Shown here: positions 1 through 42,879 of the stretch, piece after piece
Numbering within the stretch: the stretch's first letter is position 1
Layout: each line of letters opens with the position of its first letter
Assembly: GCA_965202585.1 (NCBI GenBank)
Contig: OZ241826.1
Location: 89,528,001-89,592,000 of the forward strand
Source: Thalia democratica
Taxonomy: Eukaryota
DNA length: 64,000 nt
Reading direction: 5' to 3'
Position numbers and translations under genes: made by a program
The notes under the pieces: model-generated
The model's input: the letters and a program-made list of their open reading frames with translations, nothing else
Told to the model about the DNA's origin: nothing
The model's database searches: none

Positions 1-3000
1 TCCCCTAAGACAATAAGGGGTTTGTGATTATGGGCGCTTTTCAATGCTAGTACTTCGTTCCATCCTCCTACAAAGTTATACAAGTTTAAATAAGTCAATA
101 AGTTGTAAGAGACATAATATAATATAAGCAGTTTTTAACTTATAAATATTGAAACCTCAATTTTATATTATAAAATTTTTCTAGGTTTTATAAATAGATA
201 CATTCTACTTTTGTAAGATTTTACATGCTAAAATGGTCTACAGAATAAAATCTTTAACATAAGATAAACGATTATATTCGAAATTTATCACCGAATAAGA
301 AAGATATAATTTGAATTTTTTACCTGTTTTTAATTTAACTAGAAACACACTACTTTTTAGGCTAGAGTAGTTCTTATTAAGTTCATATCTGCTATTTAAT
401 ATCGTACCACATCTACTTAACACAACTTTGAGGATTTAAACTAAATTATACAAGTTTTAAATGGTTTTTAAATGATAATTGAAGCTAATTTTTGTTAATA
501 ATATAATACTTTTTATTGCGTAAAAAATTACTCTTTTAGATTTGACTATTCTGATTTCAACAATTCCAATTATTTCAAATCAAAAAATTGAAGGATTAAT
601 AATACGAAATTGTCTAAAACTCTTATAAAACGTATATATTTAAACAATAGCTTTATGATTGTAAAAATCAATAATAAAGTATACTATGTAACAGCAATTT
701 AGTGTCTTTAAGTACTTTTAACTATATCTTGATAATAATGTGGAATTAAATAAATATATATACCATAAAGGATTTTTATTGTCGTAAATGTTACAAATAT
801 TAGAAAAAAGGTTCAAATGAGATAATATTGAAAAAAGAACATAAAGATAAAATTTACTAAAAGAGTTTAAATTATCGTTATTTTAATCGTAGTCCAGTGA
901 ACCCAAAATGCACCAAATTTATGTTTGTTTGCAAAACTCTTCTCTAATATAGACTCTTCTTATTTTAAGTATTATATATATATATAAACTTTAAGATTTT
1001 GCAGTTCTATCTTTTAAAAAGGTTCTTTTTAATGGTTAGATAAAACGTGCCTAGTCTTGACGAAGAAAGTTCAATGAATTATAAGTACTATATTTGCTGA
1101 AGTAGTTAAGTTTATAACGTATTCGTCAATACTATGCATTACAAATATCGGACACTATATCATTTAAAACTTAAAACTATTTAAGTTTTAAGCTATACAA
1201 CTTTGTCATCTTAAAATACATATTAAAAGTTGTTCACACTACAACATACGCACTTTCGCTTAGACATTCTTTGAAATTTTCTATCAGCTTGTCAAAGCTC
1301 GGCTGAAACTTCTTGAATCCATAGAAAAATGAGCTGAGAAAATGACGGAAGGTTTCTAAAACCTGGTGCTTGAACTCGAACTTGTTGTTGAAAAACCTTC
1401 GATAAAAATAGAAAAAATAAGTAACCAACAAATGGTATAACAGCAAAGTAGTCATTGGCTTAAGTATGCAATTTCAACCTAGTACAAAAGTGCGTAGGTA
1501 CGAAAGCGTACTAATATGGAAAATACCATAAGAGCTACCTTTTGAAGTCTTCGTCTTGTTTGGTGTCTGCATTGTTCCAAGGAAAACTGGAAATAAAACA
1601 GTAGGTTAAGAAATATTCTTATTAAAATTTTTTAAGATTAACTTAGTTTATGTTTTATATCAATTTTTTTCCTATAAAAGCGAATCCAATTTAAACTGTG
1701 ACAATTAAAATTCCGGCACATCAAGTTGATAATAAGTTATGAAGAGAAAACATCTTAAAAACTGTCCTAAATTTTAAAATTATAAAAATGAACCTAAAAG
1801 GCTAAATAAAGGTATATTAGTTTTTAATGAAAAACTGAAAAGTTAACATATTAAAACAGGCTTGAAGAATTACTAAAAATAATTAAGTTTTAGTATGCTC
1901 GAACACATATTTAACTAAATTATTTTTACTTTAATAAAAATGTTCGAGTTTCAACTATTAGAACCAAATTTGTCTTGCACCATTTAAAAGTTAATTATGA
2001 TTATATCTTCAGTTGTACTTTGCTAAAATAAACTTTAAGAGTTACCTAGGAAAAGCTAATACAACAATGATTCCGAAACTGAATAATAAAAATACTATGG
2101 TTAAGGTTGTTTAAAAATACTAAAAAAAAGATAACATATATTTTCCACTTGAATAAATATTAAGAAAGCTCAAACGCGTGTTTAAGAAAAAATGCCTATC
2201 TAAAGAGTGCGTATTCACCAAAACAATTACTGCAATTAATAAATTGTCAGGTTTATTTAAATGTTTCAATAAAACTTTTGAAGAAGACCTTTTGTAAGCA
2301 ATTTATTATCATAAATGTTTAGTTAACAAAATTTTAAATTTTAAACATTTAAAATGGCTTAAAAAATAAATACAATTAAAGAATTAGCGTTATATATATC
2401 GTAACATTTTTATATCAACAGTAAACACTGAAAACAATTATTTTTGTAAAATGGTCTGGTAATGCACTCATTTGCACAAAAAACTTACCAAGTTAGCTCG
2501 ATAAATTATAAAACTCACTTCATGTACAGGATGTAGTAAACGCAGATTCCGAGCGACCACATCCTCATGGCTTTCTTCATCCCGCCAGCTTTACCTTTTG
2601 ATAAAAACTCGGCTTCCGAATAACACCAGCTGTACCTAGTTGGTCTCTCACTTTCTTCAACATTTCCCATCTTCACCACCATCCTAGAAAAAAAAAATCA
2701 AGTTGAAAATGCGCTACTAATTAAACTATATAAACCATGTCATTCATTTCTCATTATTGAAATATGTGACTAGTGAGTTATGTAGCTAATCACTTTATGA
2801 TAGAAACTAAAATAACATTTAGAACCAATTTAAAAAAGTTTTTTGAGATGATTTTTTTTGCCGCACTGAATAACAAGCACAAACATGTTGTTTCGATCTA
2901 CGATCAGTCCTTCCACAATCGCTTGCTTATCCTTGTCCCCCGAACTTGCTTCGTGCTTCTTATGGTAATCTCTCACTTGTTCTATCACCTTCAGGATCCA

Positions 3001-3791
3001 ACACAGTTTTTGTTTTGCATCTGAGCGTTGAAGTGTAAATTTTAGATAATTTTAAAAATATCTTTTGTTTACCTAGTAAACCTCGTCAACACGTTTATAA
3101 ACGAATAGTTATGTCATTGTTTACAATTTATTAACTGCTTCATATATAAATGTAGCAGTAAAATAAACAAGGTCTAGCTAATATTTGATAATCAAACAAT
3201 TGGTAAACTAAAGTTTTCATAATTTATTTTCTAGAGATTGCAGAAAAACTTTGAAACAGTTTTGCAACAATTTCTGGTCTTTTATTTGTAAAACTATTTT
3301 TGGACTTAACTTTGAGTTGATTATAAAAATCTAACCAAATCTCCTAGCTATATAAAACGTCACAAAATTTTAAGAACAATCTACAGTTTTAAATTCAGTG
3401 TTTACTATTTCAACTTGGCAGCATAATAAGTGTTTATTTATAATTATAAAGTTTCTACACATTTAAGAAACTTACGTATCTATTTTAACTTCAAAATTTG
3501 TATTTTAAATGACAAAAATCTTTAATGTAGAGTACATACACTTCAAACAAAATACACCTCTTGAAACATATTTTTGACTTCACGAAATATAATTAAAAAC
3601 AGCAATAAAGCAAATGTACTTAATATTAAATAAAATCCTACTTAACTTACCTAATTAAAATTGTTTACATATTTTTTTGTTTCTTTGAAATAAATTATTT
3701 AAAAAATAAAACAATGTTCACCTGCAATTTTTAGGTGAGTGTTAATAGGCAACAGACCACCATTTATGTGATTAAAACGGTTAACTTCCAT
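1..3791 (-). CDS. Kinase-C-lobe (pseudokinase)/orphan-domain gene, copy 1; 3' end runs off the left edge of the window
   Basis: Phase-consistent GT-AG exons: 3791-3722, 3020-2885, 2683-2519, 1586-1539, 1396-1254, 67-<1. Product: MEVNRFNHINGGLLPINTHLKIADAKQKLCWILKVIEQVRDYH...IVEGLIVDRNNMMVVKMG...YSEAEFL...MWSLGICVYYILYMNFPWNNADTKQDEDFKRFF...QPSFDKLIENFKECLSERGWNEV. WSLGxxxYxxL...PW matches kinase subdomain IX/X. No HRD, DFG or APE. The same exons recur in the other two copies. Confidence 0.75.
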
Positions 3792-4632
3792 AATTAGCTC
3801 TTGTAAACTATCCTAATGTGTGTGCAAAATACTTTTAGTTTAGGGAGTTTTTAGCTAAATTTCTCTATACACAGAATGCTTTTTGTTTTAACTCATGTAT
3901 CATTAAATCAGAATTTTAATTAATTAATTTAAGTACTTGTTGTACTGTATTTATAATTTGTTTTTATTAGTTTCTGTTTAAACTTTGTTAAAACTGTGAA
4001 TAATTTACCACTGTTAGAATAAGTAGAGTGACAACATATTGAAAAACAAACCACTACTCTAAAGGGGAAGGTTAGTACTACATATTATTTTCTTTAAGAG
4101 TTTAATGGATAATACTGAATTAAGAAATTTAAAACGATTGTAATAAAAAAATAAAATTTGTTTAGAATGATATCCAATACTTTTTACAGGAAACATTACA
4201 TTTGTAGTTTTTATCATGTCTTATGTATTTTAACATTTTAAATAAAAAAAAGCCGATAGTAAATAAAAATTATTAGTTTTCCTCTAATAGCCGTAATAAG
4301 TCGCTTTTACAGAGATACAGGTATAATCTTTAATGTAACCAAAAAAAAAGCAACTAGTAAATTTAAACTAGTTTCATTAAAATCTCTTTTCTTAAAATGC
4401 GATAGAATAAGTGAATGAAAAATTCTAGCTTTTAGCAAAATATGTAATGTTAACTTCTGAAGTTAAAAAAAAAGTGAGCTTTTTATGAAAACTCAATGTT
4501 AAACAAAACTAAACAATCTAGTTTTAAAAACTCAAACAAAAACAAATAAAGTTTAAGGTTAAAAGTATTATAGGCACTTGATGGGATATAAAATTCAAGC
4601 TAACTGTGCTTTTTGTAACTAATTTGAAACGA

Positions 4633-4635
<3 letters not shown>

Positions 4636-4663
<28 letters not shown>
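4636..4663. repeat. (TA)n microsatellite
   Basis: About 14 TA units. A shorter copy lies at ~29803-29822 in the duplicated block. Confidence 0.9.
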
Positions 4664-7398: not shown

Positions 7399-7564
7399 TA
7401 GTAATCTACCAGATCAACAAGTTAGGATCTGGGATGCGGATCTAGATGTTTATTTTAGGATAAGGATCAATTTTATAAGTCGAGAACCGGCCGGATCCAA
7501 ATCTTATTTTTCAACTAGAAACCGGCCGGATACGAGCTCAGATTTTGGTTCTGATGAATCATTA
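7399..7564. mobile_element. Degenerate short relative of the CCGGATCCGG-repeat hAT-like MITE
   Basis: Ends tagtaatctaccagatc / gatgaatcatta resemble the TIRs of 37255-38092, and it carries aaccggccggatc motifs. Present in both arms (mirror ~59760-59925), so it predates the inversion. No clean TSD. Confidence 0.45.
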
Positions 7565-7756
7565 CTTAGAACTGTTGCAATTCAAACTTAATTAGCATTA
7601 AGTGATTAAATCCAAAGAGTTATTATACGTATAAAACAAATTAGTTTAGTAAATTTTAAAAAGTTATGAAAAATTTTCAAAAATTTAAACTTTTAGAGTT
7701 TCAATTGTACGAACTAAAGTAGTAGTGCACTCAAGCTATTTCGCACTAAATTTATT

Positions 7757-8181
7757 GGTTACATGACAATTCAAATTCGGACAACTCAAATTCCGACAAT
7801 TCAAACTCTTAAAAAGTTATTTAGGTAACTATATCTCAATAAGTAATACCAATTTGAAAAAAAATAAAATATACATATGTAGATCTTATTAATATCTACA
7901 AGCCACTTTTTTATTTTTTGCTAAATGTAAAAATTTTTCAAGATATTTTAAAATTACTAAAAATAACTATACTTTTTAATTTATTTAAGCCATATTTAAA
8001 AAAACATTTAATGTTTTGCAAAAAGAAAAAAAGGGTTTGTAGATATTAATATGACCTACATATTTGTTTTTTATATTTGACAGATATACATTACTTTTTT
8101 ATTTGTGGCCGTTTCATTTTTTTTTTTAAGAATTTGAATTGTCGGAATTTGAATTGTCCGAATTTGAATAGTCGTGCACCC
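7757..8181. mobile_element. Mutator-like (MULE) MITE
   Basis: ~60-bp TIRs (GGTTACATGACAATTCAAATTCGGAC... / ...GTCCGAATTTGAATAGTCGTGCACCC). 9-bp TSD AAATTTATT at 7748-7756 and 8182-8190. The other arm has the empty site (single aaattcatt, ~59560). Confidence 0.9.
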
Positions 8182-9227
8182 AAATTTATTTACCTAACCA
8201 TAAAGTAACTCTTATCTTTATCATAAATTTAACCTTTTTTACTAATGGTAAACAAATCTACTGTTTTAAAAGCTCAGAATTAGCAATGGTACGGTTTCAA
8301 ATCTTTGATAGTATTTTTATAGTTTTATAATGATAGTTTTGTTATTGTTTTAATTCTACTAGTTAATAGGTTTTATTTAACTTTTAGCACTTAAGAGCTC
8401 TTTGAGCAGAAATTTGTTTGCCGTACTCAAAAAGACCAAAATAATATTATTATTCATGAAAGCACTTAAGTTCTGTAACATTTTTAAGTTAAAAAAAGCT
8501 TAATACTATAATATTTATGAGTATACAAATATTAGTGGATCTTATACTTTTTGACAAAAAGCTCGGCATATAAAGTATTAAAGCTATAGCTAACTTACTA
8601 GCATATAACTAATTGCTAATTTTTCTGTTAAATCTCAATTGAAATGCGGCCACCAGAACAAGTGAAAAGAAATTGTAAGAAAGTTTTCTCAATAAAATTA
8701 TTTAAGTGATTAATTTACAATTTATTGTTTCATATTTACCATTCAGGTAAATTAAATACGCGGATAAATGTAGTAAACCTTTGCAATAAAAGGTCAACTA
8801 CTAATCCTGAAAAATTACTAACAGCTTATTTATTTGAGCGTGATCGTTATGTTACAGTTCTTCTTATGTAATTGTGTTATATAAGTTAAGTATAGCAACT
8901 TACTCACTTTTAGACGTTTTGTTTGAAAATTTTAAAACCTGCTAGATCAGGTTCCCTAGTACAAAAAAAAATGAATACATAACAATAATACATAACCCAA
9001 CGTTTTATTTAAATTTTATTAGAGAAAAAAAAACAAAGCCGAGTAATTTTTTTTTTAATTGATTTAATAAATAAAATGAAAAAGCAAGTAAAAAATTTAT
9101 TACCAAATTTGTATACGTTTTTCAGCTCATTAAGCATATTTAGTTCACTCAAACTAAAAAATAATTCTATACGCTAAACTAAGTTATAGTTAATTTTCGT
9201 CTAAACAGCTTTATACAAATTTTAATG

Positions 9228-13404: not shown

Positions 13405-13575
13405 ATCAGTTCTATTGTACTTTGTAGAATTTAAATTTGACAGTTTTATTGTGACTTTGTAGATTTAAAAGTTATCAGCTCTATTTTGACTTTGTAGATT
13501 TATATTTTGTTAATTTTATTGTGAATTTGTTGCCTTAAAATTTGTCAGATCTATAATGACTGTGTCGATTTACAA
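13405..13575. repeat. Degenerate ~35-bp minisatellite, ~5 units
   Basis: Units resemble cagttctattgtgactttgtagatttaaaattt. Mirror copy at ~55075-55250. Confidence 0.65.
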
Positions 13576-18449: not shown

Positions 18450-18454
<5 letters not shown>

Positions 18455-21181: not shown

Positions 21182-24100
21182 GCACGAAATAACTTGATAA
21201 AGACAAGGAATGCCTAATTTTTACTGTTTTTATTTTACTTTTTGCTCTATTTGTTTTCATTTTACGAGTTTTAACAATGTAAGCAAACTTTAGACACGTG
21301 ATATTCTTCTTTTTACTAAACCGAATAAAATTTGACACTGCAAGTAAACATTATTTTTCGAAAATGGTCCAAAATAAAACGTAATATATCAAAGTGTTTT
21401 TTGTTTTTGTATAACTTTTTTACCATTGTTTAGCAAAGAGCTTTTTATTTCATAACGTACTAAATAAAAATTAAAAACAACTTTTGATTTTATGATACGT
21501 TTGTTCTGTTTTTTTTTTTGAAATCTGCTTTTCTTAATAAACTATATTGTATACTATATATATTATAATATAACTAAACTACAAAACAACATATACAATG
21601 TTGACATAAAATATTTAGGTTGATGTTCACTTAAGAGTATATTTTTCATCTGCTACTTAGTTTGGTTAAACAAAAAGCTTGAATTTTAACTTCTACAAGA
21701 TAAGCTAAAATAAAGCTTTATATTTTTAAATACAAACAGAAAAAAATCTGTTGTAAAAGTCATTTAAACACTCTTTACAAACTTTTAATTTAAAATTAAC
21801 TTAAATAAATCCAGAAAAAATTGATTTTTAAATACAAATTCCGATGCTCACTTTTCAGTTATCGTAGGCTATCAGAGCAAAAACTAAAGTAAAATTTCAC
21901 AAAACTATTATTATAAATATACTAAAATTTATATTAGAATTGTACAAAAAACTCAAACCCTTAATCAACAATGTTAGGTTATTTAAAATGTGCAACCTAT
22001 TTGTAAACAAAACTACCTTATCTAGTTTTTAATTGTTTAAAACACAACTTTGTTTTTTAAATTATTATTTTAAAAATTATATTGAAATTAAAAATTAAAA
22101 AACCTCAGTAAATTTATTTATCTATTTTTGTAAAACTTTTATATAGCCCATATAATTGACAACACGTGAGGAGTCTAAGGTTCTAGATAAACCACTATAC
22201 GAGTTAAAAAAATTGACACCAAGTAAAAAAATACATTGGTATTTTTATGCGAGCTTTCTGCTGAAACTTGGTCACCCATAAATTGATATCTACAAAAAGA
22301 CTTGCCTTTTATATTGTACCCTTATCCATATATTACTGGTCACAAAAGTCAAAAAATAGTTTAAGTAATAACTGATAACTTTGAACCTTATACATTATAC
22401 TATGAAACAGTAATCAAAACTACAAATACAATAAGTAAAACTACGATGATCATAAACATATAAAAGCTTCAGAAAGTTTATTTTCAAGCTTAATATGAGC
22501 ACAAAACCCAGTAAATGTTTTATACTTAAGCTCTAAAATTGTTAAGTTCGTTAAAATAAACTTCTTGTTCTGTCAATACAACGTAAATGCACTTCCTTCA
22601 TTCTAAATTAACACTTTAAACTGTAATCCATAAATTGTTTAGTTGGTTAAAAACATCTTTTGTTTTCTGAAAGCTTCTGATAAAAATATTGGTATAGTGT
22701 TTTCAATTAAATTTAATTATTTTTAGTTACTAAAAATATTCTTAAAGCCTTTGTAAAAAACGGCTATCAATATAAAAATAAAGAACTAGATAAACTTTAA
22801 AATGCAGACTGACTTAAATTTGGTATAATATTTGGTTTTAAATTAGTTACCATATTTGTTGTATTTGAACATGTATGTAGATATAAGTTATTAATTTTAG
22901 TTAATATAAATCCTAGTTTGAACATATCACACAAAAAGAAATTGAAAAAAAGTTTAATTTAAATGTTAATTAATTTACCTTTACTCAACTTTTTAAAACC
23001 AAGAGTAAAGGTTTAAGTTAAGATATGACTTAAAACCATATAAGTTAAAATACTTTACTAGACTGAAAGCAGAAAAAAAAAATTTAAAGTCCTTGTGTAG
23101 ATTTTATTTAACTATTGAACATATATTTTAGATATTAAAAAATAACTAACATTAACAAAACTGTGCTTTAAACTTTTGCTGCATAAAATACCAGCTACTT
23201 ATTAAAATTTCTATGTATCTTATAAAAAGTAAAAAGAATTAAATACCATCATGTTTGCACATTAGCCTTTTAAACGAATAACATGTAAGTACAGATGACA
23301 TTTTTCGAAAGCGTTAGAAAATTAACAAATAATTATTTATGTTTAGCACCAAGTTTTAAACCCTGGATGTGTTATTCAATTTTTAAGAAAAATATTTTAT
23401 TATAATCTAACTATATATTTTGAATTTTAGACCATCTCAGCATGAATATCAAAACTAAATTTTCAACCAAAGTATTTTTATTTATATAAAACTTTTCGAA
23501 TATCTTACAAAATTTATATTGTAGCTATAATTAAAATTGTAAAGTGTCACCCGTGCATAATAATCACTAGTTCAAAATAGGAGCTTGTGAATTTCTTACT
23601 CGTACGTATACAAACACTTATCGCAACAAATAAAAAAAAACAACAATGTTTCATATATCACATGAAAAGCCTCCGGTACGATTCCTCGAGCTCCGTGTCT
23701 TCGTGCAGCGGTTGAACCCAAAAGTCTACGTCACCAGGAGCGCATTTTTCCGAATACTTCAATGTTCGCCTAACATCGTTGCCCCTCCTAGAATTATTTC
23801 TCGTTCTTTTGTTCCGCCCGTGTTTTCCATCAGACTTCCTCGGCGTCTTCGGTTTGCGCTTGTTAGTTTTTCCCACCACTTTCCAACCGCCGTCCTCGGT
23901 CGGCGGAAGGTTCACCTTGCAGATGTCGGCCACGCTCTCGCTCCTCTTCACTCTCTCGATCTCCTCCAGCATGTTGTCACGCAGCTCCTCGTTCCTCCTG
24001 AAAGGCAGGCACGTGTCGACGCACTCGCGCAAGTGCTCCATCACTCTCCCGTACATGTCGGCCTTCTCGGTCATCCACGACAGCGCGCCCTTGTGGCAGA

Positions 24101-25250
24101 GCATTTGGCGCACGTAGGAAAGCTTGTTTGCCTGCTCACGCGGAACGGCGTCCTCGGCGACGATGCACGTTTTGGCGAAGTTCAGCAGCCTGTACGCGTC
24201 CAATTTCTTTTCTACGGAGGTTTCAAATCTCTCGCCAACTACTTCGTAAACGCCGCACAACTGTTGCACACAATAGAAAGTAAACTTGTGTTTTCCACCG
24301 ATAGCCCTGCTCACTTTACTCGGAAACTTGGAGATTTCGAGTTCCGCGTTCAACAGCCTGTTCCAGTAAGTAACAGCAAGCTTGTTTTCTTTTTCTCCGA
24401 ATTTCACTTTGCAATAAGCTCCGTCGCAAAATTCTGAATCACAGTCGTAGTCGCACTGACTGTATTTTAAATATTCGTAAGTATATCTGTAAAAAATGTG
24501 GCACCATTTATCAACCATTATAGCCATTCTTCCCAGCTTTTTGTCGCTGTGTACATGTTCGTAAGTTTTACCTCTGACCTCGTTCAAAGCGTTTTCGAGG
24601 CTCTTCTCACCGCACCCAGCTCCGTATTCTTTCGGGTCCGCACCCTTCATTCCTTCCACGATCTCGTGCACGAGCATCAGCATCGACGTCTTGATGTACG
24701 GAGCTATCTTCTTCATCAAAAGCGCAAAAATGTGGTGCACTCTCAACAGCCTTTTAGTGCCTTCTATTTTCTTTTCCGCAATTTCTTCCACGGACAAGCC
24801 TTGACGTTGATTCTCAAATTTATCTATTTTAGACAAGGGCTCAGGTTTTTCCCCGAATATAGTTTTTAAAATAAAGTTAAACTTTCGCTTTTGAAACCAA
24901 TCGAGATTATCTATACCAATTCTTTTAAGGTCTTCATACTCCTTTCGAGCAGAAATCGAATTGAGATTTCCGGTGACGTTGTTAGTGTTCAGCTTACACA
25001 GAGGCTGCTTTCTTTGAACGTTAGGTTGCTTCAAGCAGTCCAGATCGTTAATATCTGCATACAAATCTCTTTTATCACTTCTTTGATGCTTGAACTTGAT
25101 ATGTGTGGCGCTTTTATTTCTCAAACATTTATCTTTTATTTGTACGTTGAACTTTTCCCCCAAGCCAATAAGGGTTTTATGGTTATGAGCGTTTTTCAAT
25201 GCTTGTACTTCGTTCCATCCTCCTACAAAGTTATACAAGTTTAAATAAGT
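19589..25250. repeat. Segmental duplication block A, direct copy of 30557-36230
   Basis: Near-identical (~97% by eye; 9 differences in the 287-nt RFX exon) from 19589 to ~23850. It then diverges progressively through the large coding exon. Confidence 0.95.
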
Positions 25251-28200
25251 CAATAAGTTGTAAGAGACATAATATAATATAATATAAGCAGTTTTATTCT
25301 TATAAATATTGAAACCTCAATTTTATATTATAAAATTTTTCTAGGTTTTATTAATAGATACATTCTACTTTTTTAAGATTTTACATGCTAAAATGGTCTA
25401 CAAAATAAAATCTTTAACATAAGATAAACGATTACACTCGAAACTTATCACCGAATAAGAACGATATAACTTAAATTTTTTACCTGTTTTTAGTTTAATT
25501 AGAAACATACTACTTTTTAGGCTACAGTAGTTCTAATTAAGTTCATATTTTCTATTTAATATCATACCACATCTATTTAACACAACTTTGAGTATTTGAA
25601 CTAAATTAAACAAGTTTTAAATTGTTTTTAAATGATAATTGAAGCTAATTTTTGTTAATAATATAATACTTTTTATTGCGTTAAAAATTACTCTTTTAGA
25701 TTTGACTATTCTGATTTCAACAATTCAAATTCTTTCAAATCAAAAAATTGAAGGATTAATAATACGAAATTGTCTAAAACTCTTATAAAACGTATATATT
25801 TAAACAATAGCTTTATAATTGTAAAAATCAATAATAAAGTATACTATAAAACAGCGATTTATCGTCTGTAAATATTTTCAACTATATCTTGATAATAATC
25901 TGGAATTAAAAAAACTTATATACCATACAGGATTTTTATTGTCGTAGTTGTTATAAATATTAGAAAAAAGGTTCAAATGAGATAATTCTGAAAAAAGAAC
26001 TTGAAGATAAAAATTACTAAAAGAGTTTAAATTATCGTTATTTTAATCGTAGTCCAGTGAACCCAAAATGCACTAAATTTATATTTGTTTGCAAAACTCT
26101 TCTCTAATATAGACTTGACTTATTTTAAGTACTATATATATATATATATAAACTTTAAGACTTTGTACTTCTATCTTTTAAAAAAGTTCTTTAAAATGGT
26201 TAGATAAAACGTGTCTAGTCTAGACAAACAAACTTCAATGAATTATAAGTACTATATTTGCTGAAGTAGTTAAGTTTATATCGTATTCGTCAATACTATG
26301 CATTACAATATCGGATACTATATTATTTAAATCTTAAAACTATTTAAGTTTTAAGCTATACAACTTTGTCATCTTAAAATACGAATTAAAAATTGTTCAC
26401 ACAACAAAATACGCACTTTCGCTTAGACATTCTTTGAAATTTTCTATCAGCTTGTCGAAGCTCGGCTGAAACTTCTTGAATCCATAGAAAAATGAGCTGA
26501 GAAAGTGACGGAAGGTTTCTAAAACCTGGTGCTTGAACTCGAACTTGTCGTTGAAAAACCTTCGGTAAAAATAGAAAAATTAAGTAACCAACAAGTGGTA
26601 TAACAACAATGTAATCATTTGCTTAAGTATGCAATTTAAAAATAGCACAAAATTGTGTAGATAGGTAACGTACTAAAGTAAAAAAATATTATAATAAACT
26701 ACCTCTTAAAGTCTTCGTCTTGTTTGGTGTCTGCATTGTTCCAAGGAAAACTGAAAATAAAATAGTAGGTTAAAAAATCTACTTATTAATTTTTCAAAGT
26801 TAAATTTATTTTAGTTTTTTTACTTACTTCTTTTACTTTTAAAGTGTTACAATACAAATTAAGTTGTGAGAACTAAAATTTCGGCACATCAGGATAAAAA
26901 AAAAGTTTTAAGGGGAAACATCTTAAAAAGTAAATTAAACTTTAAAAATATATTAATTAACCTATAAGGCTAATTATTGATAAGTTAATATTGAATGAAA
27001 AATTAGATAGTCTTTAAAAAATATATTAAAAGAAGAATGAAAAATTACAAATAACATTTTTAAAAATAACCAAACTTTAGTATACTAGAAAATTAATTTA
27101 AATAAGTTATTTTTAAGTTAATAAAAATGTAGGAGCCTGTACTGTTAGAAATTTATTTTTTCCTGTCCTTGTTTTAAAGTTACCTATGATTATATATTCC
27201 AGTTGTACTTTTGTCGAAGAAAATTTTATATTTACCTAAGAAGTAGTTAATATATTAATGCTTAAACTGAGTAAAGAGAATATTACGGTCAACGTTGTTG
27301 CCGAACTACAAAAGCAGAATACAGTAATCTTCCAGTTGAATAAATATTTTAAATAGCGCACAAAATTGCGTGTTCAACAAAAAAAACTGCGTTTCTGAAA
27401 TTTACGTACTCACCGGAACAATTACTGCAATTAATAAATTTTCAGGTTCATTGAAATGTTTCAAGAAAACTTTTGTGCAAAATCTTTTGTAGGCATTTTA
27501 TTATTATAAGTCGTTAGTAAACACATTCAAAATTTTGAACATTGAAGTAAGATTTAGAAAGTATGTATAGTTAAAAAATTAGCGTTAATTCTATCGTAAC
27601 ATTTTCAAGGAAAAATAAAAAAACTGAAAAAAAAATATTTTTGTAGAACGGTCTGGTAATGTACTCATCAGCACAAAAACACCAAATTAGCTCGATAAAT
27701 TATAAAACTCAGTTCATGTACAGGATGTAGTAAACGCAGATTCCGAGCGACCACATCCTCATGGCTTTTTTCATCTCGCCAGCTTTACCGATTGATAAAA
27801 ACTCGGCTTCCGAATAACACCAGCTGTACCTAGTTGGTCTCTCACTTTCTTCAATGTTTCCCATCTTCATCTTCAACCTAGAAAAAAAAAATTCAAGTTC
27901 GTAAAGGCGCTACTAATTAAACTATATAAACCATGTCATTCATTTCTAATTATTAGAATATGTGACTAGTGAGTTATGTAGCTAATCACTTTATGATAGA
28001 AACTAAAATAACATTTAGAACCAATTTAAAGTAGTTTTTTGAGATGATTTTTTTTGCCACACTGAATAACAAGCACAAACATGTTGTTCCGATCTACGAT
28101 CAGTCCTTCCACAATCGCTTGCTTATCCTTGTCCCCCAAACTTGCTTCGTGCTTCTTATGGTAATCTCTCACTTGTTCTATAACCTGCAGGATCCAACAC

Positions 28201-28996
28201 AGTTTTTGTTTTGCATCTGAGCGTTGAAGTGTATTTTTAGAACATTTTTAAACATATCTTTTGTTTACCTAGTAACCCTTGTCAACGCGTTTACAAACGA
28301 ATAGTTATGTCATGGTTAACAATTTATTAACTGCTTCATATATAAATATAGCAGTAAAAAAAAAACAATGTCTAACTAATGTTTGATAATCATGAAATTA
28401 GTAAACTACAGTATTCATAATTTATTTTCTACAGATTGCAAAAAAAATTTTTGAATAATTTTGCAATAATTTCTGGTCTTTTATTTGTAACACTATTTTT
28501 GGACTTAACTTTGAATTCATTATAAAATTCTTACCAAATCTGCTAGCTATATAAAAAGTCACAAAATTTTAACAATAATCTACAGTTTTCATTCATTAAT
28601 TCATTGTTTACTCTTTCAACTTGGTTGCTTATAAAATGTTGATTTGTAATTATAAAATTTCTACACTTTTCAGAATCATACGTATATATTTAAGCTTCAA
28701 AAATTATATTTTAAATGATAAAAAATTATTTGTAGAGTACATACACTTCGAACAAAATACACCTGTTGAAACATATTTTTGACTTTACGAAATATAATTA
28801 AAACAGCAATTGAGCTAATGTACTTAATATTAAATAAGAATCCTACTTAACTTACCTAATTAAAATTGCTTACATAGTTTTTTATTTCTTTAAAACAAAT
28901 TTTTTAAAAAATAAAACAATGTTCACCTGCAATTTTTAGGTGAGTTTTAATAGGCAAAAATCCACCATTTATGTGATTAAAACGGTTAACTTCCAT
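23658..28996 (-). pseudogene. Kinase-C-lobe/orphan-domain gene, copy 2; intact frames but the exon-3 donor is mutated GT>CT (possible pseudogene)
   Basis: Exons 28996-28927, 28216-28081, 27877-27713, 26750-26703, 26559-26417, 25222-23658. After exon 3 the minus strand reads ATGAA|CTGAGT, whereas copies 1 and 3 read ATGAA|GTGAGT. Read-through gives AAC TGA. The terminal exon is fully open. Confidence 0.65.
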
Positions 28997-33500: not shown

Positions 33501-36230
33501 CTCTAAAATTGTTAAGTTCGTTGAAATAAACTTCTTGTTCTGTTAATACAACGTAAATGCACTTCCTTTATTGTAAATTAACACTTTAAACTGTAATTCA
33601 TAAATTGTTTAGTTGGTTAAAAACATCTTTTGTTTTCTGAAAGCTTCTGATAAAAATATTGGTATAGTGTTTTCATATTAATTTAATTATTTTTAGTTAC
33701 TAAAAATATTCTTAAAGCCTTTGTAAAAAACGGCTATCAATAAGAAAAAAAGAACTAAATAAACTTTAAAATGCAGACTGACTTTAATTTGGTATAATAT
33801 TTGGTTTTAAATTAGTTACCATATTTGTTGTATTTGAACATGTATGTAGATATAAGTTATTAATTTTAGTTAATATAAATCCTAGTTTGAACATATCACA
33901 CAAAAATAAATTGAAAAAAAGTTTAATTTAAATGTTAATTAATTTACCTTTACTCAACTTTTTAAAACCAAGAGTAAAGGTTTAAGTTAAGATATGACTT
34001 AAAACCATATAAGTTAAAATACTTTACTAGACTGAAAGCAGAAAAAATAAATCTAAAGTCCTTGTGTAGATTTTATTTAACTATTGAACATATATTTTAG
34101 ATATTAAAAAATAACTAACATTAACAAAACTGTGCTTTAAACTTTTGCTGCATAAAATACCAGCTACTTATTAAAATTTCTATGTATCTTATAAAAAGTA
34201 AAAAGAATTAAATACCATCATGTTTGCACATTAGCCTTTTAAAAAATAACATGTAAGTACAGATGACATTTTTCGAAAGCGTTACAAAATTAACAAATAA
34301 TTATTTATGTTTAGCACCAAGTTTTAAACCCTGGATGTTTTATTCAATTTTTAATAAAAATATTTTATTATAATCTAACTATATATTTTGAATTTTAGAC
34401 CATCTCAGCATGAATATCAAAACTAAATTTTCAACCAAAGTATTTTTATTTATATAAACTTTTCGAATATCTTTCAAAATTTATATTGTAGCTATAATTA
34501 AAATTGTAAAGTGTCACCCGTGCATAATAATCACTAGTTCAAAATAGGAGCTTGTGAATTTCTTACTCGTAAATATACAAACACTTATCGCAACAAATAA
34601 AAAAAAACAACAATGTTTCATATATCACATGAAAAGCCTCCGGTACGATTCCTCGAGCTCCGTGTCTTCGTGCAACGGTTGAACCCAAAAGTCTTCTTCG
34701 CCAGGAGCGCATTTTTCCGGATACTTCAATGTTCGCCTAACATCGTTGCCCCTCCTAGAATTGTTTCTCGTTCTTTTGTTCCGCCCGTGTTTTCCATCAG
34801 ACTTCCTCGGCGTCTTCGGTTTGCGCTTGTTGCGCCTTTTCACATCAGTGAAACCGTCGTCCTCGCGCGGCGGAAGGTTCACCTTGCAGATTTCGGCCAC
34901 GGTGTCGCTCCTCTTCACTCTCTCGATCTCCTCCAGCATGTTGTTGCGCAGCTCTTCGTTCCTCCTGAAAGGCAGGCACGTGTCGACGCATTCGCGCAAG
35001 TGCTCCATCACCCTCCCGTACATGTCGACTTTCTCCGTCATCCACGACAGCGCGCCCTTGTGGCAGAGCATTTGGCGCACGTAGGAAAGCTTGTTTGCTT
35101 GCTCACGCGGAACGGCGTCTTCGGCGACGATGCAGGTTTTTGCGAAGTTCAGCAGCCTGTACGCGTCCACTTTCTTTTCTACGGAGGTTTCAAATCTCTC
35201 GTTTATTACTTCGTAAACGCCGCACAACTGTTGCGCACAGTAGAAAGTAAACTTGTGTTTTCCACCGATAGCCCTGCTCACTTTACCAGGAAACTTGGAG
35301 ATATCGAGTTCCGCGTTCAACAGCCTGTTCCAGTAAGTGTTGGCCAGCATATATTCTTTTTCTCCGAATTTCACTTTGCAATAATCTCCTTCGCCACAAC
35401 CCGGATCGCAATCGTAGTCGCACTGACTGTATTTTAAATATTCGTAAGTATAACTGTAGAACATGTAGCACCACTTATCAACCATTATAGCTTTTTTTGT
35501 CAGTTTTTCGTCGCTGTGTGCCACCTCGTAAGTTTTACCTCTGACCTCGTTCAAAGCGTGTTCGAGGCTCTTCTCACCGCGCACTGCTCCGTATTCTTCC
35601 GGGTCCGCACCCTTCAGTTCTTCTACGATCTCGTGCACGAGCATCAGCATCGAAGTTTTGATGTACGGAGCTATTTTCTTCATAAAAAGTGCGAATATGT
35701 TGTGCACTCTCATCAGCCTTTTAGTGCCTTCTAATTTCTGTTCCTCAATATCATTCTTGTACATGGGTTCAGGATCTTTGTCTAAATCAGTTCGTTCACC
35801 TTTAAAGGATTCAGGTTTTTTCTCAAATTTTTCTTCAAGCGTTTCCAACCTTTGCCGTTCAAGCGAGTTAAGTTTATCTCTACCGATTCGTTTAAGACCT
35901 TCATACTCTTCATAATCTGTGACATAAGTCATACTGTGATTTATATTGACATTGTTAGCATCAAGCTTATTAAGAGGCTTCCTTTGCACGTTGGGTTGCT
36001 TCAAGCGGTCCAGATCACTAATGCCATCATACAAATCTCTTTTATCACTTGTTTGATGTTTGAATTTTTGACGGTGGGTGTTTTTATGTCTAAAACTTAT
36101 GTTTATATTTTGACCTCGAGATTTATTTAGATGATGCTTTCCGTGATGTTTGTTTGCTATTTCAATACTAGGTTTGTGGTTAGGATCAATTTTTAATGCT
36201 TGAACTTCGTTCCATCCCCCTACAAAGTTA
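30557..36230. repeat. Segmental duplication block A copy (matches 19589-25250)
   Basis: Starts at ATCACTgcactaagtttac and is colinear with block A. Confidence 0.95.
30712..32164 (+). pseudogene. RFX: 5'-truncated RFX copy with an intact DBD and a 1-bp deletion in the last exon
   Basis: Only the last four exons were duplicated (first starts at 30712), with splice sites intact. CTG AAA AGA AAA has become CTG AAA GAA AAT, so the tail is frameshifted and stops at 32162-32164. Confidence 0.75.
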
Positions 36231-39200
36231 GAAATTTCTTAATAAATCTGATAATCTTTGATAAAAAGTGATAAAAATCTTAAATAAGAACTACGTGTAA
36301 AATTTAGAAATTTTATAAAATTAAACGTAGATATTTTGTAACTGGTTAAAATTGAAAGTTGGTATTTAGTTAATACTTTTGCTGAATAAGTTTTATTTAT
36401 CATTGTATATTATACTGTAAATAGATAAATATATGCTACACCAATTTATTAGTAAAGCTTTAGAATATGTTAACCTATGATATTTAAAGTTTATCACTAT
36501 TAAAGATTGACTACAGAAAACAAGTAATTGTTTTAGGTTAAATAGCTATAGCTACATTCATACTTTCTTGATAAAATTTGCTACACCTACTAATACCAAA
36601 CTTCAAAAAACACAACATATTTATACTTAATTATATTTCTAAAGTAATATTTTAGTTAAAACTTGTGTTACAGTGTTTATCGAAAGTAATTCCAAAAGAT
36701 AATAACTTTAATATAAATTTGTAAAAACAAACCATAAGGTCTGAAACCAGGCTTTCTGAAACTTTTATTTTAACGCTTTAATAAACTAAATAAGCTATTC
36801 CTTTTTCTTAAGAACACTGCGCGCAATCTTTTTTGTAGTTAACTGTTAAATGACTAACAATGTTGTGTCATTGCGTCACCCCACTATCTACATTTGTGGA
36901 AAATATTAACATGCAGAGCTAATTTTAAAGCTGTTTGATTAAACTTATGCTTCTCAAGAGGTTTTTAAATTTTTAAACATAGTTATCAAATTTCAAAAGT
37001 GTTTTATAAATTTAAAAAAAAATATTATTCTAGCTGTATTTAGGTTTGTACAGTTAAATTGAAGTTTTTCTTGGTTTTTTAAACCAATTGCCAAGAAGTA
37101 TAAGTAGTACAACTGATTAAGTGTTGCACACAAAAAATTACACTTATGACCATTAAGGTTAGAAAATATCTGTTTTGGTTACGAAACGTCTTTACTGCTA
37201 TTTAGGACCTAATGTTTAAGAAACTTAGTATATTTAAAAACAGTGTGTTTTAAATAGTGATATACCGGACACGGATCCGGAATTTTTTTTCAAACTAAGA
37301 TCCGGCCGGAACCAGATCCAGATATTTTTTTCATATCAAGATCCTGCCGGATCCGAATGTCAGACAAAAATGGCAATATGGGACCGGATCCGGACCCGGA
37401 CCTTAAAAAACTTTATAAAAAATTAAACTAGCCCGAGACAGCCTAAGATTTTTTAACGAGCAGGGTTGTCACTGTTTAAGTCAAAAAAAAAATAGCTAGA
37501 GTAAATATAAACTAGCCTGAGTCAGAATGAAGTTTTTAAAAACTAAAAAAATACTTTAATCTAATAATAAGAAGAACAGCTAGCCGTAAGGTTGACTATT
37601 TGGTAATAAAATTTTTAATTTTACAATATAGGTATAGAGTTGCATTTCTGAATTGTTTATTTCATATTTTAAATGTAAACAAATGTAAGTTAGTCACGTG
37701 TACAAAATGAGCCAATCACGGTAAGAGTTTAATATTAGCTGACGAAAATGACTCTTTTTAATTTACACAGGGTTTGTTTTTGAAAAAATACTTTTCTTTA
37801 TGCTCTTTTTTACTAAGTAGATCCGAATCGGCCGGATCTCTGTTAGAATCCGGCCGGAACTGGATCCGAACTTTTTTTTTAAATTATGATCCGGCTGGAA
37901 CCGGACCCGGATCTTTTTTTTAACTCGAGATCCGGCCGGAACCGGATCCGGATCTTTTTTTAAATCGAGTTCCGGCCGGAGCCGGATCAGAATCTTTTTT
38001 TTATATCAAGATCCGGCCGGATCCGGATATCAGACAAAAATGGCAATATCCGGCCGGATTCGGGCCCGGATAGTGAGTCCGGTACATCATTATTTTTAAA
38101 TTTAGTATTGGTCTAACTTAGCGTAACTAAATCAATTTCTTTACTAAACACATGACAACTTAAGCATAGGTAACATATTTAAATTAACTTAGTTTTAAAC
38201 AAATACAACTTAAAAAAATTAAAGTACAACATCGAAATCAAAAACATAACATACGAACTTTCACTAAGACATCCTTTAAAATTTTCTATCAGCTTTTCAA
38301 AACTCGGTTTGAAGTCCTCAAATCGAGAAAAGAACGAACTGAGAAAATGGTTGAAGGTTTTCAGAACCGATACGTGCTTGAACTTTAAGTTGTCGTTGAC
38401 AAATCTGAATTTATATACAATTAAAAAATATGTAAAGCCAATAAGTTTCTTATACAACACAGAAATTTTTGGCTGGATTACGTTGTTTGAACCCAGAACA
38501 AAAGTGAGTAGCAAAGAAAACGACTTAAATAAAAAACCTCTTGAAGTTTTCGTCTTCTTCAGTGTCTGCCGTGCTCCATGGATAACTGTAAATAACAATA
38601 TAAATTGATATAGAGTCTTATTTAATAAAGTAATGTACATCTTGAGAGCGTTAAGTTTTTTATAATGCTTATGGAAAAAATAAAAAGTTGACTGTGATAT
38701 CACTATACTAATTTATCTTTGCTTCGATAATTTTTGGTTGTAACATAAGATTGCTGACTACTAACTACTACAATTCTAAGTGCTTACATTAGAGAATGAT
38801 TTTTTTTTTCAAAAACTTAGTTGAAACAGGCTAAAACTTGATAGCAAAAAACTTCATGGTTATTGTTGTGTTAGTAAAATGTTGAACGCTAAATCGTTAT
38901 GTAAACAGTAAAACTGTTGTACTTGCTTAATTTGTTTTAATATTCACAGTATATCTATACCGAGTTAAAACACTTAACTTATTATTTAAAATTTGAAAGT
39001 ATTGAATGTCGAACAACTATTGTAATTTATAAATTAACATTTTGACAAAAAAAAAACATTAATAAGAAGACTGGTCAGTCAAAAATCAGTTTTCAAATCA
39101 GCTCGACAAACGTGTCTCATTCCAAAACTCACTTCATGTTCAGGATGTAGTAAACGCACACTCCGAGCGACCACGTGTTCTTGAAACTCGACAGCTTACG

Positions 39201-42200
39201 AACGTCTGAATAGCCAGGACACCACGGCTCATACTCGCTCGAACCTTCTTGAAATTCCACCTTCAACATGTTGTTGCTATCCACGGACATTTCTTCAACG
39301 GTCGCGACATCATCCAGGCACGCCCACTTTCCTCCGTTCTCCTCCTGATGATCCTTCGCTCGCTCCAACAACTGCAGGATCCAACTCAGTTTTTGCTTCT
39401 CATCTTCGAAATCGAAAAGCATAACTTTTAGTGTGTTTATTTAACGTGTCTGCTTTTTACACTAAGTAGATAACTGAATCATATAGTTTTTTGTTTTATT
39501 TAAAGGTTTTATAGGTGTTATTTACGATTACTGGATAACTGATTTCCATTTGATAATTTCACAGGTGTTATTTAAAACGTGTCTGTTAATAGTTTTTTAG
39601 TACACTTTTCAGGACAATTCATTATTTTAGACTATATACCAGTGGCGTCGCGTGGTATTTTTTTTAGATGGTGCACAATTTAAAAGAATATCAATTATTT
39701 TAATAAAAATATGTTTTTACTGTCAAGTTTGAAAACAACTGAACTTTTGCTACACCTGAAGATAAGCTTTGCTTTTAAGGGCATAGGGGGGATGAAACAA
39801 TTTGATCTTATTTTATGTAGTTTTTACTAAGCTACAAGATGCTTTTTACAGATTTTAAAAATTCAGTATATGTTTTAAGATATAGCCGGTCAAAGTCAAA
39901 GGCAACAAAAGGTTCATAATGGGAGGCACAAACTAAAACAGTGTTTTAAAAAATGTTTTAAACCCCCCCCTTTATGCCCTTAACATCTACTTTAGAATTA
40001 TTTTACTGAAATTACTTTATACAGTTTTAATTTAACTACAAGTCATCTTTTATCAATATAAAAAATTCTTAAAATTTTTGAGATATGGTAATTCACAGTC
40101 AGAGGTACAAATGAATCCTTATTTTTATAATATAAACTCAAACAACAAATAAATCAAATCACTAAAATCATATCTTTTTTTTATAAGTTGGCCTCAAAAT
40201 CTTTAGATGTTTCTTTGTTAAAACAAAAAAAAATTGCTAAATTAAATATTTAAAACACCAAGAAAATAAAAGTTAAATCAAAAATTTTTTTTTTGTATAT
40301 ATAAAAATATATATTGATACTTAAAAATTGAAAACTTCTCTTCAACAAAAGTATAAAGTTTAAAAAAAATTAAGATGAAAAAGTTTAATTAAAAATTGTT
40401 TTAAAAATGATGGAGAATATAGGTTTTCAGTAAAATTGTATTTTTTGCTGTTTTGGTTTGCTCCTTGTATAATAAACCATTGTACTCTCTGGCTTTGACT
40501 GGTTCTAACTAAAAGTTTAATTGGAAATTTCAAGTTTATTAAAGAGTAACTATTAGCTTTCTGAAAAAGTTAAAATAAGAACAACATGTAAAAAAGTGCC
40601 TATACACCCTCCCCCCTTACTCCTCACTAATTTGCACATTTTTTTTTACAAACATTAACATTTTTATTAACTTTTTTTCTAATTTTAATGTTTTTTGTTG
40701 GAGGTTTAAAATTCAAAAGTTTTTTAAGGATATCTTTTCTTTATTTAATATTTATTTGTTTTTCATTTTGATGACAGTAATTTTCTCAGGAGCTCAACTT
40801 TTTTAAGTTTAGTTGTGAGGCTGTTGAACTTTTCAAGAATTTTAAAGATAATTTATAAATATGTAACCATTATAGAAGTAAAAGTTTGGTTAGTTAGTTT
40901 TCATGTGGCCATAGGGGTAAAACACTTATTTTTTAATTTTAAATAACCTTGTTATTTTCAGAGTAAAAATTAAAACCGCTTTAGTCAGCCTGAATATTTT
41001 TCTAATTTGGTCTGTTTTAATTTATCTTGGGTCATCTTGAGTTTTTAACATTTCTAAGTTATCCTGATTATGAGGCAAGGCAATCATGTTTCAACAATTT
41101 TATCTAAAATGTTTGCTTTGTTTATGAAAAAATTAAACCAAAAGTTATATAAAGTAGAGGTAGACTAAATTTTCCTAAAATGTTAAACTACTCTAAGTAA
41201 CCAAAGTTTCTAAATTAAGGCTATTTACTTTATTTAAATATGTGATTGTTTCAATAATACTATTTTTTATTTAATATAAATCTAAAATATTTTTCTGTAA
41301 GAGTGAACTAGAAGTTTATAATAAGCTTCTTAATTCTTTTTTTCAGAACTTGAATTTTATTAACTTTATGATAATAATAATCAGTTATAGTTAAGTTTAT
41401 GTATGCAGATTAAAATAAAAAATCAAATTTTTAAGACTTTGGTGATTTAGGGTTTTTATCTTTTTTTTCAAAATATGCAACTTATGACAAATCTTTTAAT
41501 AGAAGTGATCTGTTAAATCTAAAAAATCATGTGGGTACATAAACTCAAGTTTAATCCTTTGCAGTAGCTTGCTTTGTTTTTATTTTATGTTTACAATAGC
41601 TTGTAGATGATACTTAAGCAAGTCCTGTTTTAGGGAATATTCAACTTAGCTTACTTACCGCAAGATATTGATTTTGCGGTAATTCTTGAAGAAATTTTGC
41701 TTTTTTGAGTTCATTTGCGGCAGTCAGCTAAGAGTTTGCGGCAGTGAAGTGGGCAAAATGGTCGTTTTCAAATTTGAAGTTTTAAAAGAGATTTCGTTCA
41801 AAAAAAATAACGAAAACGTTATAGATACTTTTTTTTTTCTTAGAAAATTTCAAGGTGGTGCAGTTGCGGTAGTGCAACACCCCACGCGACGCCCCTGCTA
41901 TATACCACGTCTATTTTATGTATGCATATATAATTTAATTAAACTATCATTGACAAAAAATAGTAAATTTAATTAGGTTGGGTACTTAAATTGTGTTACA
42001 CTGTAAACACTTTTGTTTTCCGTTTATTAATTTTTAACCCATTACCTTGTAAACGAAAATACAATATAACTACTAAATAAGTAAAAGTTATAAAATGTTA
42101 AAGCAGTAAAATGATCAAAGTTTTTTTTCTATAATTAAAAGAATTCTAAATATCTTGTTTAGATAGTTAGTTTTTCTAGATTAACAAACTGTAATGGTAT

Positions 42201-42879
42201 GTGAAAGATTTGAAAATGGTGCTTTTGGTGTTGGATTTTTTTGGTGACAATTAAAAATAAAAACTTCAAAGTGGTAAAATGAAAAATCTCGAATCAGCTA
42301 GTTGAAATATCTAAAATATTAGAAAAAGAAAATTAAAAATTAGTTTAAACAATGTTTAAATAAAGTTTTTAGATCGTTGTTTGCTATTTTTCCATAGTGA
42401 GATGAAAATAGTTGCTATTAATTCTAAAATTTCTATACATCTTAATAATATATATCTACAATTTTAAACCGTTTTTTATTTCCAGTGTCGAAAATAATGA
42501 AACCTCTTTCTCAAACAGTAAACTATCAAATTTATTTTAACATATTTCTATTTAGTTCTCGAAAGTTTTAGTTTTAATTTTAAATTACGTAACAGACTTC
42601 ATTGTAGTAAACGAACCTTTTAAAATAAGATGTTTATATTTAAAAACAGTCTATAAGTGGAAGGTAGAATAATAAAGAATATTTAACAAATGTATCTTAC
42701 ATCTAATTAATTATCAAAAAAAAAACTAATCTTAACAAAAAATATACTTACCACTAGTTTTCATTTCAAGGTTAAAGCAAAACATTAGAAAAAACTAAAA
42801 AATTGTCACCTGCGTGTTTTAAAGCCGTTTTCATAGGCATCGAACCACCATAGTTGTGAATTGAACGGTTATCTTCCAT
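34625..42879 (-). CDS. Kinase-C-lobe/orphan-domain gene, copy 3 (divergent 5' half); exons 42879-42810, 39403-39133, 38585-38538, 38404-38259, 36219-34625
   Basis: Phase-consistent splicing gives MEDNRSIHNYGGSMPMKTALKHADEKQKLSWILQLLERAKDH...VEEMSVDSNNMLKVEF...TWSLGVCVYYILNMNYPWSTADTEEDENFKRFV...KPSFEKLIENFKGCLSERGWNEVQ. I checked that the terminal-exon frame is open from 36219 into the listed 34625-36034 ORF. Confidence 0.8.
37255..38092. mobile_element. hAT-like MITE with GATCCGGCCGGAACCGGATCC subterminal arrays, inside an intron of gene copy 3
   Basis: TIRs TAGTGATATACCGGAC / GTCCGGTACATCATTA (reverse complement TAATGATGTACCGGAC). 8-bp TSD GTTTTAAA / TTTTTAAA (7/8 match). Confidence 0.8.
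39640..41897. mobile_element. hAT-like non-autonomous element (2,258 bp) in intron 1 of gene copy 3
   Basis: 16-bp TIRs CAGTGGCGTCGCGTGG / CCACGCGACGCCCCTG (1 mismatch). Perfect 8-bp TSD CTATATAC at 39632-39639 and 41898-41905. No transposase ORF. Confidence 0.9.
39779..39979. mobile_element. 201-bp TTAA-flanked MITE (Kolobok-like termini) nested in the hAT element
   Basis: TTAA-GGGCATAGGGGG...CCCCCCTTTATGCCC-TTAA. The interior matches one arm of the 49311-49960 foldback (gatatagccggtcaaagtcaaaggcaaca). Purine-starting termini with TTAA fit Kolobok better than piggyBac (CCC...GGG). Confidence 0.7.

Follow-up and report, generated by a model that had tools for sequence, protein, structure and literature searches.

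A salp gene family predicted to join a catalytically dead kinase C-lobe to a CXorf38/DUF4559-type HEPN domain

Three spliced paralogues in a 64-kb window of the Thalia democratica genome

We analysed a 64-kb stretch of DNA of the salp Thalia democratica (hereafter the window; assembly GCA_965202585.1, contig OZ241826.1, positions 89,528,001 to 89,592,000), which lies at 89.53 Mb of a 117-Mb contig in an assembly of 802 Mb. The window contains three spliced paralogues of about 706-709 amino acids (aa), all on the minus strand, which we refer to as copies 1, 2 and 3. Each is predicted to encode a protein kinase C-lobe that has lost its catalytic residues, followed by a variable linker, a domain resembling the HEPN domain of the CXorf38/DUF4559 family, and a basic tail.

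The gene models were built from open reading frames (ORFs), GT-AG splice sites, and intron positions and phases conserved across paralogues. Identical exon junctions and phases were kept even in paralogues sharing just 30-40% identity: the first exon of the family terminates in ...A + G|GT, the C-lobe exon stops two bases into a codon directly ahead of the (Y/F)PW exon, and the final exon is entered in phase 1. The window is AT-rich, with a GC content of about 22-26% in intergenic DNA versus 36-52% in exons. The resulting models of 706, 708 and 709 aa (Table 1) confirm the three spliced copies that had been proposed in a first-pass annotation of the window, and the nine motifs quoted there were all recovered on the minus strand at the places given for them. 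Copies 1 and 3 have intact ORFs and canonical splice sites throughout, copy 3 being the most divergent of the local copies; the model of copy 2 is conceptual. A ciliate-type genetic code, in which TAG would be read as Gln, was considered and dropped, the genome being that of an animal and the exons giving clean translations under the standard code.

The N-terminal part corresponds to a kinase C-lobe without catalytic residues

Judged by profile alignment, the N-terminal ~187 aa of the family are a protein kinase C-lobe that extends from helix D to helix I. The link to the Pfam family Pkinase (PF00069) is transitive and concerns the C-lobe only: the kinase homology of the window family follows from its match to a second salp family, here named family B, together with the match of family B to Pkinase. 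Family B was found by searching the genome with an exon of one paralogue, and comprises at least 60 loci, most of them intact. In hhalign the spliced N-terminal domain (178-187 aa) matched family B at 99.4% with an E value of 1.2e-21 over 161 columns. The fused exon 2/3 matched it at 97.8% (E 7.5e-13), the next exon gave a match (P 9e-4) that was collinear with that of exon 2/3, and in a genome-wide search the family B profile reached an exon of a window-family member with an E value of 1.4e-6. Family B itself aligned to positions 83-260 of Pkinase with 48.2 bits, above the cut-off of 31.7 bits, and its profile matched 311 kinase sequences in the PDB, best Chk1 (residues 129-267) and then SNRK, SIK3, MARK and MELK. 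By this PDB profile search via family B, the C-lobe best resembles CAMK-like kinases such as Chk1, SIK and MARK. Individual exons of the window family had no match in a Pfam scan, and their profile had zero matches among PDB sequences. The likeness of the spliced domain to kinases is far beyond chance, and the assignment of kinase subdomains in the first-pass annotation proved right when the sequences were aligned to family B and to kinases.

The same alignment bears out the loss of the HRD, DFG and APE motifs. The catalytic Asp, Lys and Asn, the DFG and the APE are all replaced, and the WSxG of helix F is retained. Thus, copies 1 and 2 read IVEGLIVD at the catalytic loop and KMG at the DFG position, copy 3 reads TVEEMSVD and VEF, and copy 2 has EAE in place of APE and keeps WSLG. 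The helix D motif lies in the first exon, where it reads FLPIKTHL in copy 2. Ahead of the C-lobe of the paralogue on contig 7 (L004:2710-3495, minus strand) stand four consecutive copies of a short helix D-like motif, L-[IVM]-P-[LF]-[ST]-x-V-hydrophobic. Besides being part of the fold, this motif may act as a linear motif in repeated form.

Family B resembles the window family in starting at the same helix D point, some of its ORFs having the Met right at the motif, and in the signatures WS/AG-ICVYYI and FPW. It differs in that its Met-initiated C-lobe, which likewise comes without an N-lobe, is encoded by a single exon, in that APE and the Arg of subdomain XI are kept, and in that another C-terminal domain takes the place of the HEPN domain. 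This domain, conserved and encoded by the second exon, has the signature FPP...GE-x-WT-x-G; it gave no Pfam match and no lead in an ESM search. A two-lobed relative was present as well: locus L023 (1257-2642, plus strand) encodes a pseudokinase of 461 aa in a single exon, with HGN for HRD and SNF for DFG (Pkinase E 2e-36), and its C-lobe matched family B in tblastn. At L024 (1025-1684, minus strand) lies a C-lobe-only gene in which the HGN loop is still present. Both genes may be related to the ancestor from which the C-lobe-only genes expanded, and these sequences suggest that the salp C-lobe arose within a local lineage of pseudokinases bearing an HGN loop.

No N-lobe found in the gene models or upstream DNA

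The first-pass annotation had raised the possibility that the proteins have no N-lobe at all. The first exon is Met-initiated in every subfamily, its junction is conserved, and the stretch ahead of the helix D motif is either short or disordered. In copies 1 and 3 the Met is preceded at a short distance by in-frame stops, including the TAG three codons upstream of the copy 3 Met that had been noted before. A translated comparison covering 3-16 kb of upstream DNA, distant paralogues included, revealed no shared upstream coding block. The conserved upstream DNA blocks that copy 3 shares with copies 1 and 2 have 19-22% GC and stops in all frames. Neither the gene models nor the upstream DNA conserved between paralogues contained a Gly-rich loop, a VAIK Lys or a helix C, and the N-lobe of L023, the nearest two-lobed relative, had no tblastn match, either in the window or among the family loci examined. 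A minor upstream similarity between copy 3 and the contig 7 paralogue (window ~49682-49871) falls within a repeat found in introns as well, and was rejected as an exon. Together these results suggest, for a first exon predicted from DNA alone, that the proteins lack an N-lobe, and the earlier suggestion is upheld by the models and by upstream comparison.

The last exon encodes a predicted CXorf38/DUF4559-type HEPN domain

The region downstream of the C-lobe had been described as a single unrecognised stretch of ~500 aa. An alignment of 11 family members divides the last exon instead into a variable linker of ~140 aa, a conserved core of ~300 aa and a basic tail. The core is predicted to be a HEPN domain of the CXorf38/DUF4559 type, and a remote member of that family, on the strength of agreeing predictions and sub-threshold sequence signals and with no match at a curated threshold. 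Four lines agree in this identification. Pfam DUF4559 (PF15112) was the top match on three distant members (E 0.0018-0.024), always across the region of an Rx4H motif; the window copies had no match to this Pfam family. An ESM feature search placed clusters of DUF4559 and HEPN_DZIP3 first (score 0.95, 206 of 256 features shared), with HEPN_Swt1 lower down. An AlphaFold model calculated from an alignment enlarged to 22 sequences (predicted local distance difference test, pLDDT, 80; predicted template modelling score, pTM, 0.81) was compared, as a predicted model against predicted models, with ESM Atlas clusters named "DUF4559 domain-containing protein" and "CXorf38 homolog", giving a template modelling (TM) score of 0.55 over 210-222 residues at a root-mean-square deviation of 4.2-4.6; other families reached at most 0.33 when scored by the length of the model, and 0.52 was obtained for a bacterial Swt1-like HEPN cluster when its own length was used. 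Finally, Foldseek against clusters of the AlphaFold DB gave probabilities of 0.97-1.0 for CXorf38 homologues, 0.82-1.0 when related invertebrate proteins are included, and about 0.1 for unrelated helical proteins. A first model (381 aa, from the 11-sequence alignment) had a pLDDT of 58, and its comparison with the PDB, AlphaFold DB Swiss-Prot and the ESM Atlas was uninformative.

The Rx4H motif is the predicted HEPN active site. Every one of the 11 aligned members carries its Arg and His (R232 and H237), and the dyad is kept across paralogues just 33-38% identical to copy 2 and in the aligned metagenome homologues; in distant paralogues the motif reads RNMLCH or RNLLCH. The genome also encodes a bona fide DUF4559 protein, a HEPN-dsRBD protein on another chromosome, and the weak links between it and the window family lie over the same motif. 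A genome search with this protein returned itself as the sole match, and a word-indexed protein search with it found no CXorf38 homologues. The profile of the HEPN region matched nothing among PDB sequences, KEN (PF06479) gave no Pfam match at E values up to 10, and a genome search for HEPN_DZIP3 (PF18738) found nothing, its controls being silent as well. A prediction of the HEPN homodimer, run without controls, scored 0.00 and is evidence neither way.

The CXorf38 HEPN domain carries an inserted Zn-ribbon (PMC3710099). In the local copies a stretch with four Cys, C-x3-C-x3-C-x5-C, is present at residues 116-135 in a poorly modelled insert; it was not found in distant paralogues. The acidic motif with which the tail ends, PLHEDTELE-x-SYRRLF, recurs in distant paralogues and in some metagenome fragments.

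Table 1. Gene models and predicted features of the window family and related loci (window positions unless a locus or megabase position is given)
Feature	Position	Strand	Remarks
Copy 1, 706 aa	3791-1	-	Last exon runs past the window start
Copy 1 exons	E1 3791-3722, E2 3020-2885, E3 2683-2519, E3b 1586-1539, E4 1396-1254, last 67-1	-	First 67 bases of the last exon
Copy 2, 708 aa	28996-23658	-	Conceptual
Copy 2 exons	E1 28996-28927, E2 28216-28081, E3 27877-27713, E3b 26750-26703, E4 26559-26417, E5 25222-23658	-	
Copy 2, predicted dead kinase C-lobe exons, aa 1-187	26417..28996	-	hhalign, profile matches
Copy 2, variable low-complexity linker, ~140 aa	24804..25222	-	Start of last exon
Copy 2, predicted CXorf38/DUF4559-type HEPN domain, 300 aa	23904..24803	-	AlphaFold pLDDT 80, pTM 0.81
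Copy 2, Rx4H motif RQMLCH	24093..24110	-	Predicted HEPN active site
Copy 2, Lys/Arg-rich basic tail, predicted disordered	23661..23903	-	Ends PLHEDTELE-x-SYRRLF
Copy 3, 709 aa	42879-34625	-	Intact, canonical splice sites
Copy 3 exons	E1 42879-42810, fused E2/3 39403-39133, E3b 38585-38538, E4 38404-38259, E5 36219-34625	-	
Copy 3, first coding exon	42810..42879	-	Met, then hydrophobic-hydrophobic-P-hydrophobic-x3-hydrophobic-x2-A, aligned to kinase helix D
Copy 3, predicted dead kinase C-lobe exons, aa 1-178	38259..42879	-	hhalign
Copy 3, predicted CXorf38/DUF4559-type HEPN domain	34871..35770	-	
Copy 3, Rx4H motif RQMLCH	35060..35077	-	
Family loci	6 in a 210-kb cluster around the window; 2 at 88.43 Mb of the same contig; 1 on contig 7; 3 on an unplaced contig		
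Family B, examples	L016:1846-2625; L013:1337-2290; L020:1889-2443	+; -; -	Many contigs

Family size, distribution and duplication

A genome-wide profile search with the last exon identified 12 loci, six of which form the local cluster, so that the amplification proposed in the first-pass annotation holds for the genome as a whole (Table 1). The three loci on the unplaced contig may be haplotype copies. Outside this genome, a word-indexed search found one relative of the core, on a Tara Oceans marine metagenome contig, and when 1.84 billion representatives were scanned in full with HMMER, just 12 proteins matched the core, nearly all of them short fragments. This scarcity of database relatives indicates that the family is confined to a poorly sampled marine lineage; by these searches it is thaliacean-restricted, or salp-specific.

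Pairwise dN/dS ratios (nonsynonymous over synonymous substitution rates) ranged from 0.30 to 0.45 in the HEPN domain and from 0.25 to 0.62 in the C-lobe, as expected of coding sequences in which both halves are under purifying, albeit relaxed, selection. Compared with its neighbours, copy 3 has a dS of 0.75-1.0 in the C-lobe and linker and of 0.20-0.25 in the HEPN domain (38259-42879 versus 34625-36219). This contrast within one gene suggests that gene conversion occurred and was restricted to the 3' half of copy 3.

Comparison with known systems

The first-pass annotation knew of no family with this architecture. Both of its elements have precedents: a stand-alone, non-catalytic C-lobe is an established module, the protein-binding KIND domain (PMC2064798), and the union of a kinase fold with a HEPN nuclease is the design of Ire1 and RNase L (PMC3710099). 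Neither the literature searched nor the listing of a 2013 survey (PMC3710099) contained a fusion of a C-lobe-only module with a HEPN domain of the CXorf38 type.

With Ire1 and RNase L the salp protein shares the placement of a kinase-fold module N-terminal to a HEPN domain with a motif of the RN/Q-x3-H type and, as its expected logic, a pair-dependent nuclease controlled by the kinase-fold part. It differs in having the C-lobe only, without the nucleotide-binding N-lobe, in the ~140-aa linker between domains that pack directly in Ire1 and RNase L, and in the type of HEPN domain, which is CXorf38/DUF4559 (Swt1-like) in the salp protein and KEN in the other two. The C-lobe is nearest to CAMK-like kinases, and the salp fusion looks like an independent one that resembles Ire1 and RNase L in design only. 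The salp module resembles KIND, which serves in protein-protein binding, in that its kinase C-lobe stands alone, lacks the catalytic residues and forms the N-terminal part of a multidomain protein. It matches, however, Pkinase and CAMK-type kinases and not the KIND profile (PF16474), which had no match on window-family and family B proteins at E values up to 10; a whole-genome search with PF16474 gave nothing at E values up to 1, and its controls gave no signal either. By sequence, the salp protein is a member neither of KIND nor of the Ire1/RNase L family. With CXorf38/DUF4559 (PF15112) it shares the predicted fold, the Rx4H motif, presence in animals and a tendency to lineage-specific expansion; its sequence remains below the Pfam threshold (18 versus 27 bits), and it has a kinase C-lobe partner that is absent from the listing for CXorf38/DUF4559 in the 2013 survey (PMC3710099).

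If the identification is correct, a kinase fold and HEPN would have been united a second time, independently, which would suggest a favoured solution for switchable ribonucleases (RNases). The family would also show a kinase C-lobe persisting and amplifying alone outside KIND, at no fewer than 70 such loci in this genome, loci that bear on the view of pseudokinase fragments as docking modules, and it would provide a new context for the CXorf38 HEPN family in a chordate relative. The present weight of these points is moderate, as they concern a lineage-restricted prediction made from genomic DNA.

Proposed function and alternative explanations

HEPN RNases work in pairs, through a composite Rx4-6H site, and in Ire1 and RNase L the kinase-fold domain controls the pairing of the KEN-type HEPN domains. 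On the basis of these paired RNases and of KIND as a binding module, we infer a switchable RNase from the domain architecture. The HEPN domain would be a metal-independent endoribonuclease that is active only as a pair of domains. The dead C-lobe, by analogy, would be the regulatory part, a platform for protein docking or self-association that controls when and where the RNase pairs, and the conserved motif at the C-terminus could be an intramolecular ligand of the C-lobe. The CXorf38 family is predicted to contain active HEPN domains and its members are fused to immune domains (PMC3710099). Such fusions, together with the tandem amplification, the gene conversion and the fairly rapid protein evolution of the salp family, are the reasons to propose a role in defence or genetic conflict. 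Taken as a whole, the reading of these genes as a salp family in which a dead C-lobe, a linker, an Rx4H-retaining HEPN domain and a tail act as a regulated RNase in defence is, on balance, probable. A bolder extension, which we regard as improbable, is that salps independently re-invented the Ire1/RNase L design, with the C-lobe as a switch through which a ligand or partner controls the pairing of a HEPN RNase of another clade, and that the family is one arm of a set of at least 70 C-lobe-only genes that serve as interchangeable sensor or adaptor heads on varied effectors in innate immunity or genetic conflict.

Several observations weigh against the regulated RNase. Its regulation by the C-lobe and its role in defence are both inferred, and no RNase activity of a CXorf38-family protein has been demonstrated in the literature searched. 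The best DUF4559 score, 18.3 bits (E 0.0018), is below the cut-off of 27 bits, and the match of the family profile to the DUF4559-dsRBD protein of the genome was weak (E 0.024 against a small database; hhalign E 0.009). Among solved structures in the PDB, Foldseek and VIA retrieved generic helical bundles for the second model (Z of at most 7.5); the VIA list for the first model contained several HEPN proteins at Z 5-6.7, indistinct from generic helical bundles. Two run searches returned public runs that contain the locus but look like DNA only, and run contigs over window positions 1-6000 covered introns and exons evenly, with zero splice joints. A candidate acceptor, CAATAG, lies immediately 5' of the copy 3 Met. 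Three of the six local copies carry lesions. In copy 2 the donor of exon E3 is mutated (CTGAGT in place of GTGAGT, ~27712), so that this copy may be mis-spliced or may use a GT 9 nt upstream of the lost donor. Outside the window, the copy at 89.72 Mb (region of L001:3098) has ATT for its start ATG, and that at 89.60 Mb (L011:7000-8650) has a frameshift and a TAA in its last exon.

These observations can be read in other ways. The proteins might be non-enzymatic kinase mimics, that is, decoys or adaptors soaking up the partners of real kinases, with the HEPN-like domain as a structural or RNA-binding scaffold. A dead and isolated C-lobe is what is found in the KIND interaction modules (PMC2064798), numerous eukaryotic HEPN domains are inactive (PMC3710099), and the absence of a demonstrated CXorf38-family activity fits this explanation too. 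The Arg and His of Rx4H are nevertheless invariant in the diverged paralogues and in metagenome homologues, and the CXorf38 family was classed as active in the 2013 survey (PMC3710099), which makes a pure mimic unlikely. The decoy or adaptor that the first-pass annotation had in mind thereby misses, in its pure form, a probably enzymatic half, whereas an adaptor or docking role of the C-lobe is plausible.

That the lesions reflect a decaying duplicate cluster without present function, made up of pseudogenes or recently dead genes, is a good deal less likely still: the donor change from GT to CT, the loss of the ATG, and the frameshift with TAA speak for decay, but copies 1 and 3, another of the local copies and the modelled distant paralogues all have intact ORFs of ~700 aa over 5-6 exons, dN/dS is well under 1 for both domains, and homologues are conserved in other marine samples. 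Least probable in our view is a two-lobed pseudokinase joined to HEPN in the manner of Ire1 and RNase L, with its N-lobe in missed upstream exons. The candidate acceptor would suit it, as would public runs that represent DNA and an upstream comparison bounded at 3-16 kb; the conserved Met-initiated first exon, the stops that precede it in copies 1 and 3, and the failure to find a conserved upstream coding block or an N-lobe-like ORF argue against it, as do the 60 or more family B genes that start at the same point in helix D. We accordingly retain the regulated RNase, built on a C-lobe without an N-lobe, as the preferred explanation.

Other features of the cluster

Two paralogous ORFs of 470 aa with a BACK domain and Kelch repeats (KLHL-like) flank family copies in the window, at 9228-10640 (minus strand) and 57104-58516 (plus strand). 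Their presence indicates that segmental duplication of a multi-gene block enlarged the cluster. On the plus strand between copies 2 and 3 lies an open frame of 101 aa (31107-31409) with the pattern ...FGK-x6-FP-x4-RRLGKR, which we take to resemble an RFX-type DNA-binding domain. Within the cluster, short interspersed repeats occur on both strands, in introns as well as between genes (39835-39945, 49383-49502, 49774-49872, 37200-38120 and 7379-7592), and their translations contain ...FDFDRLYLK... or ...IRIRPDLD....

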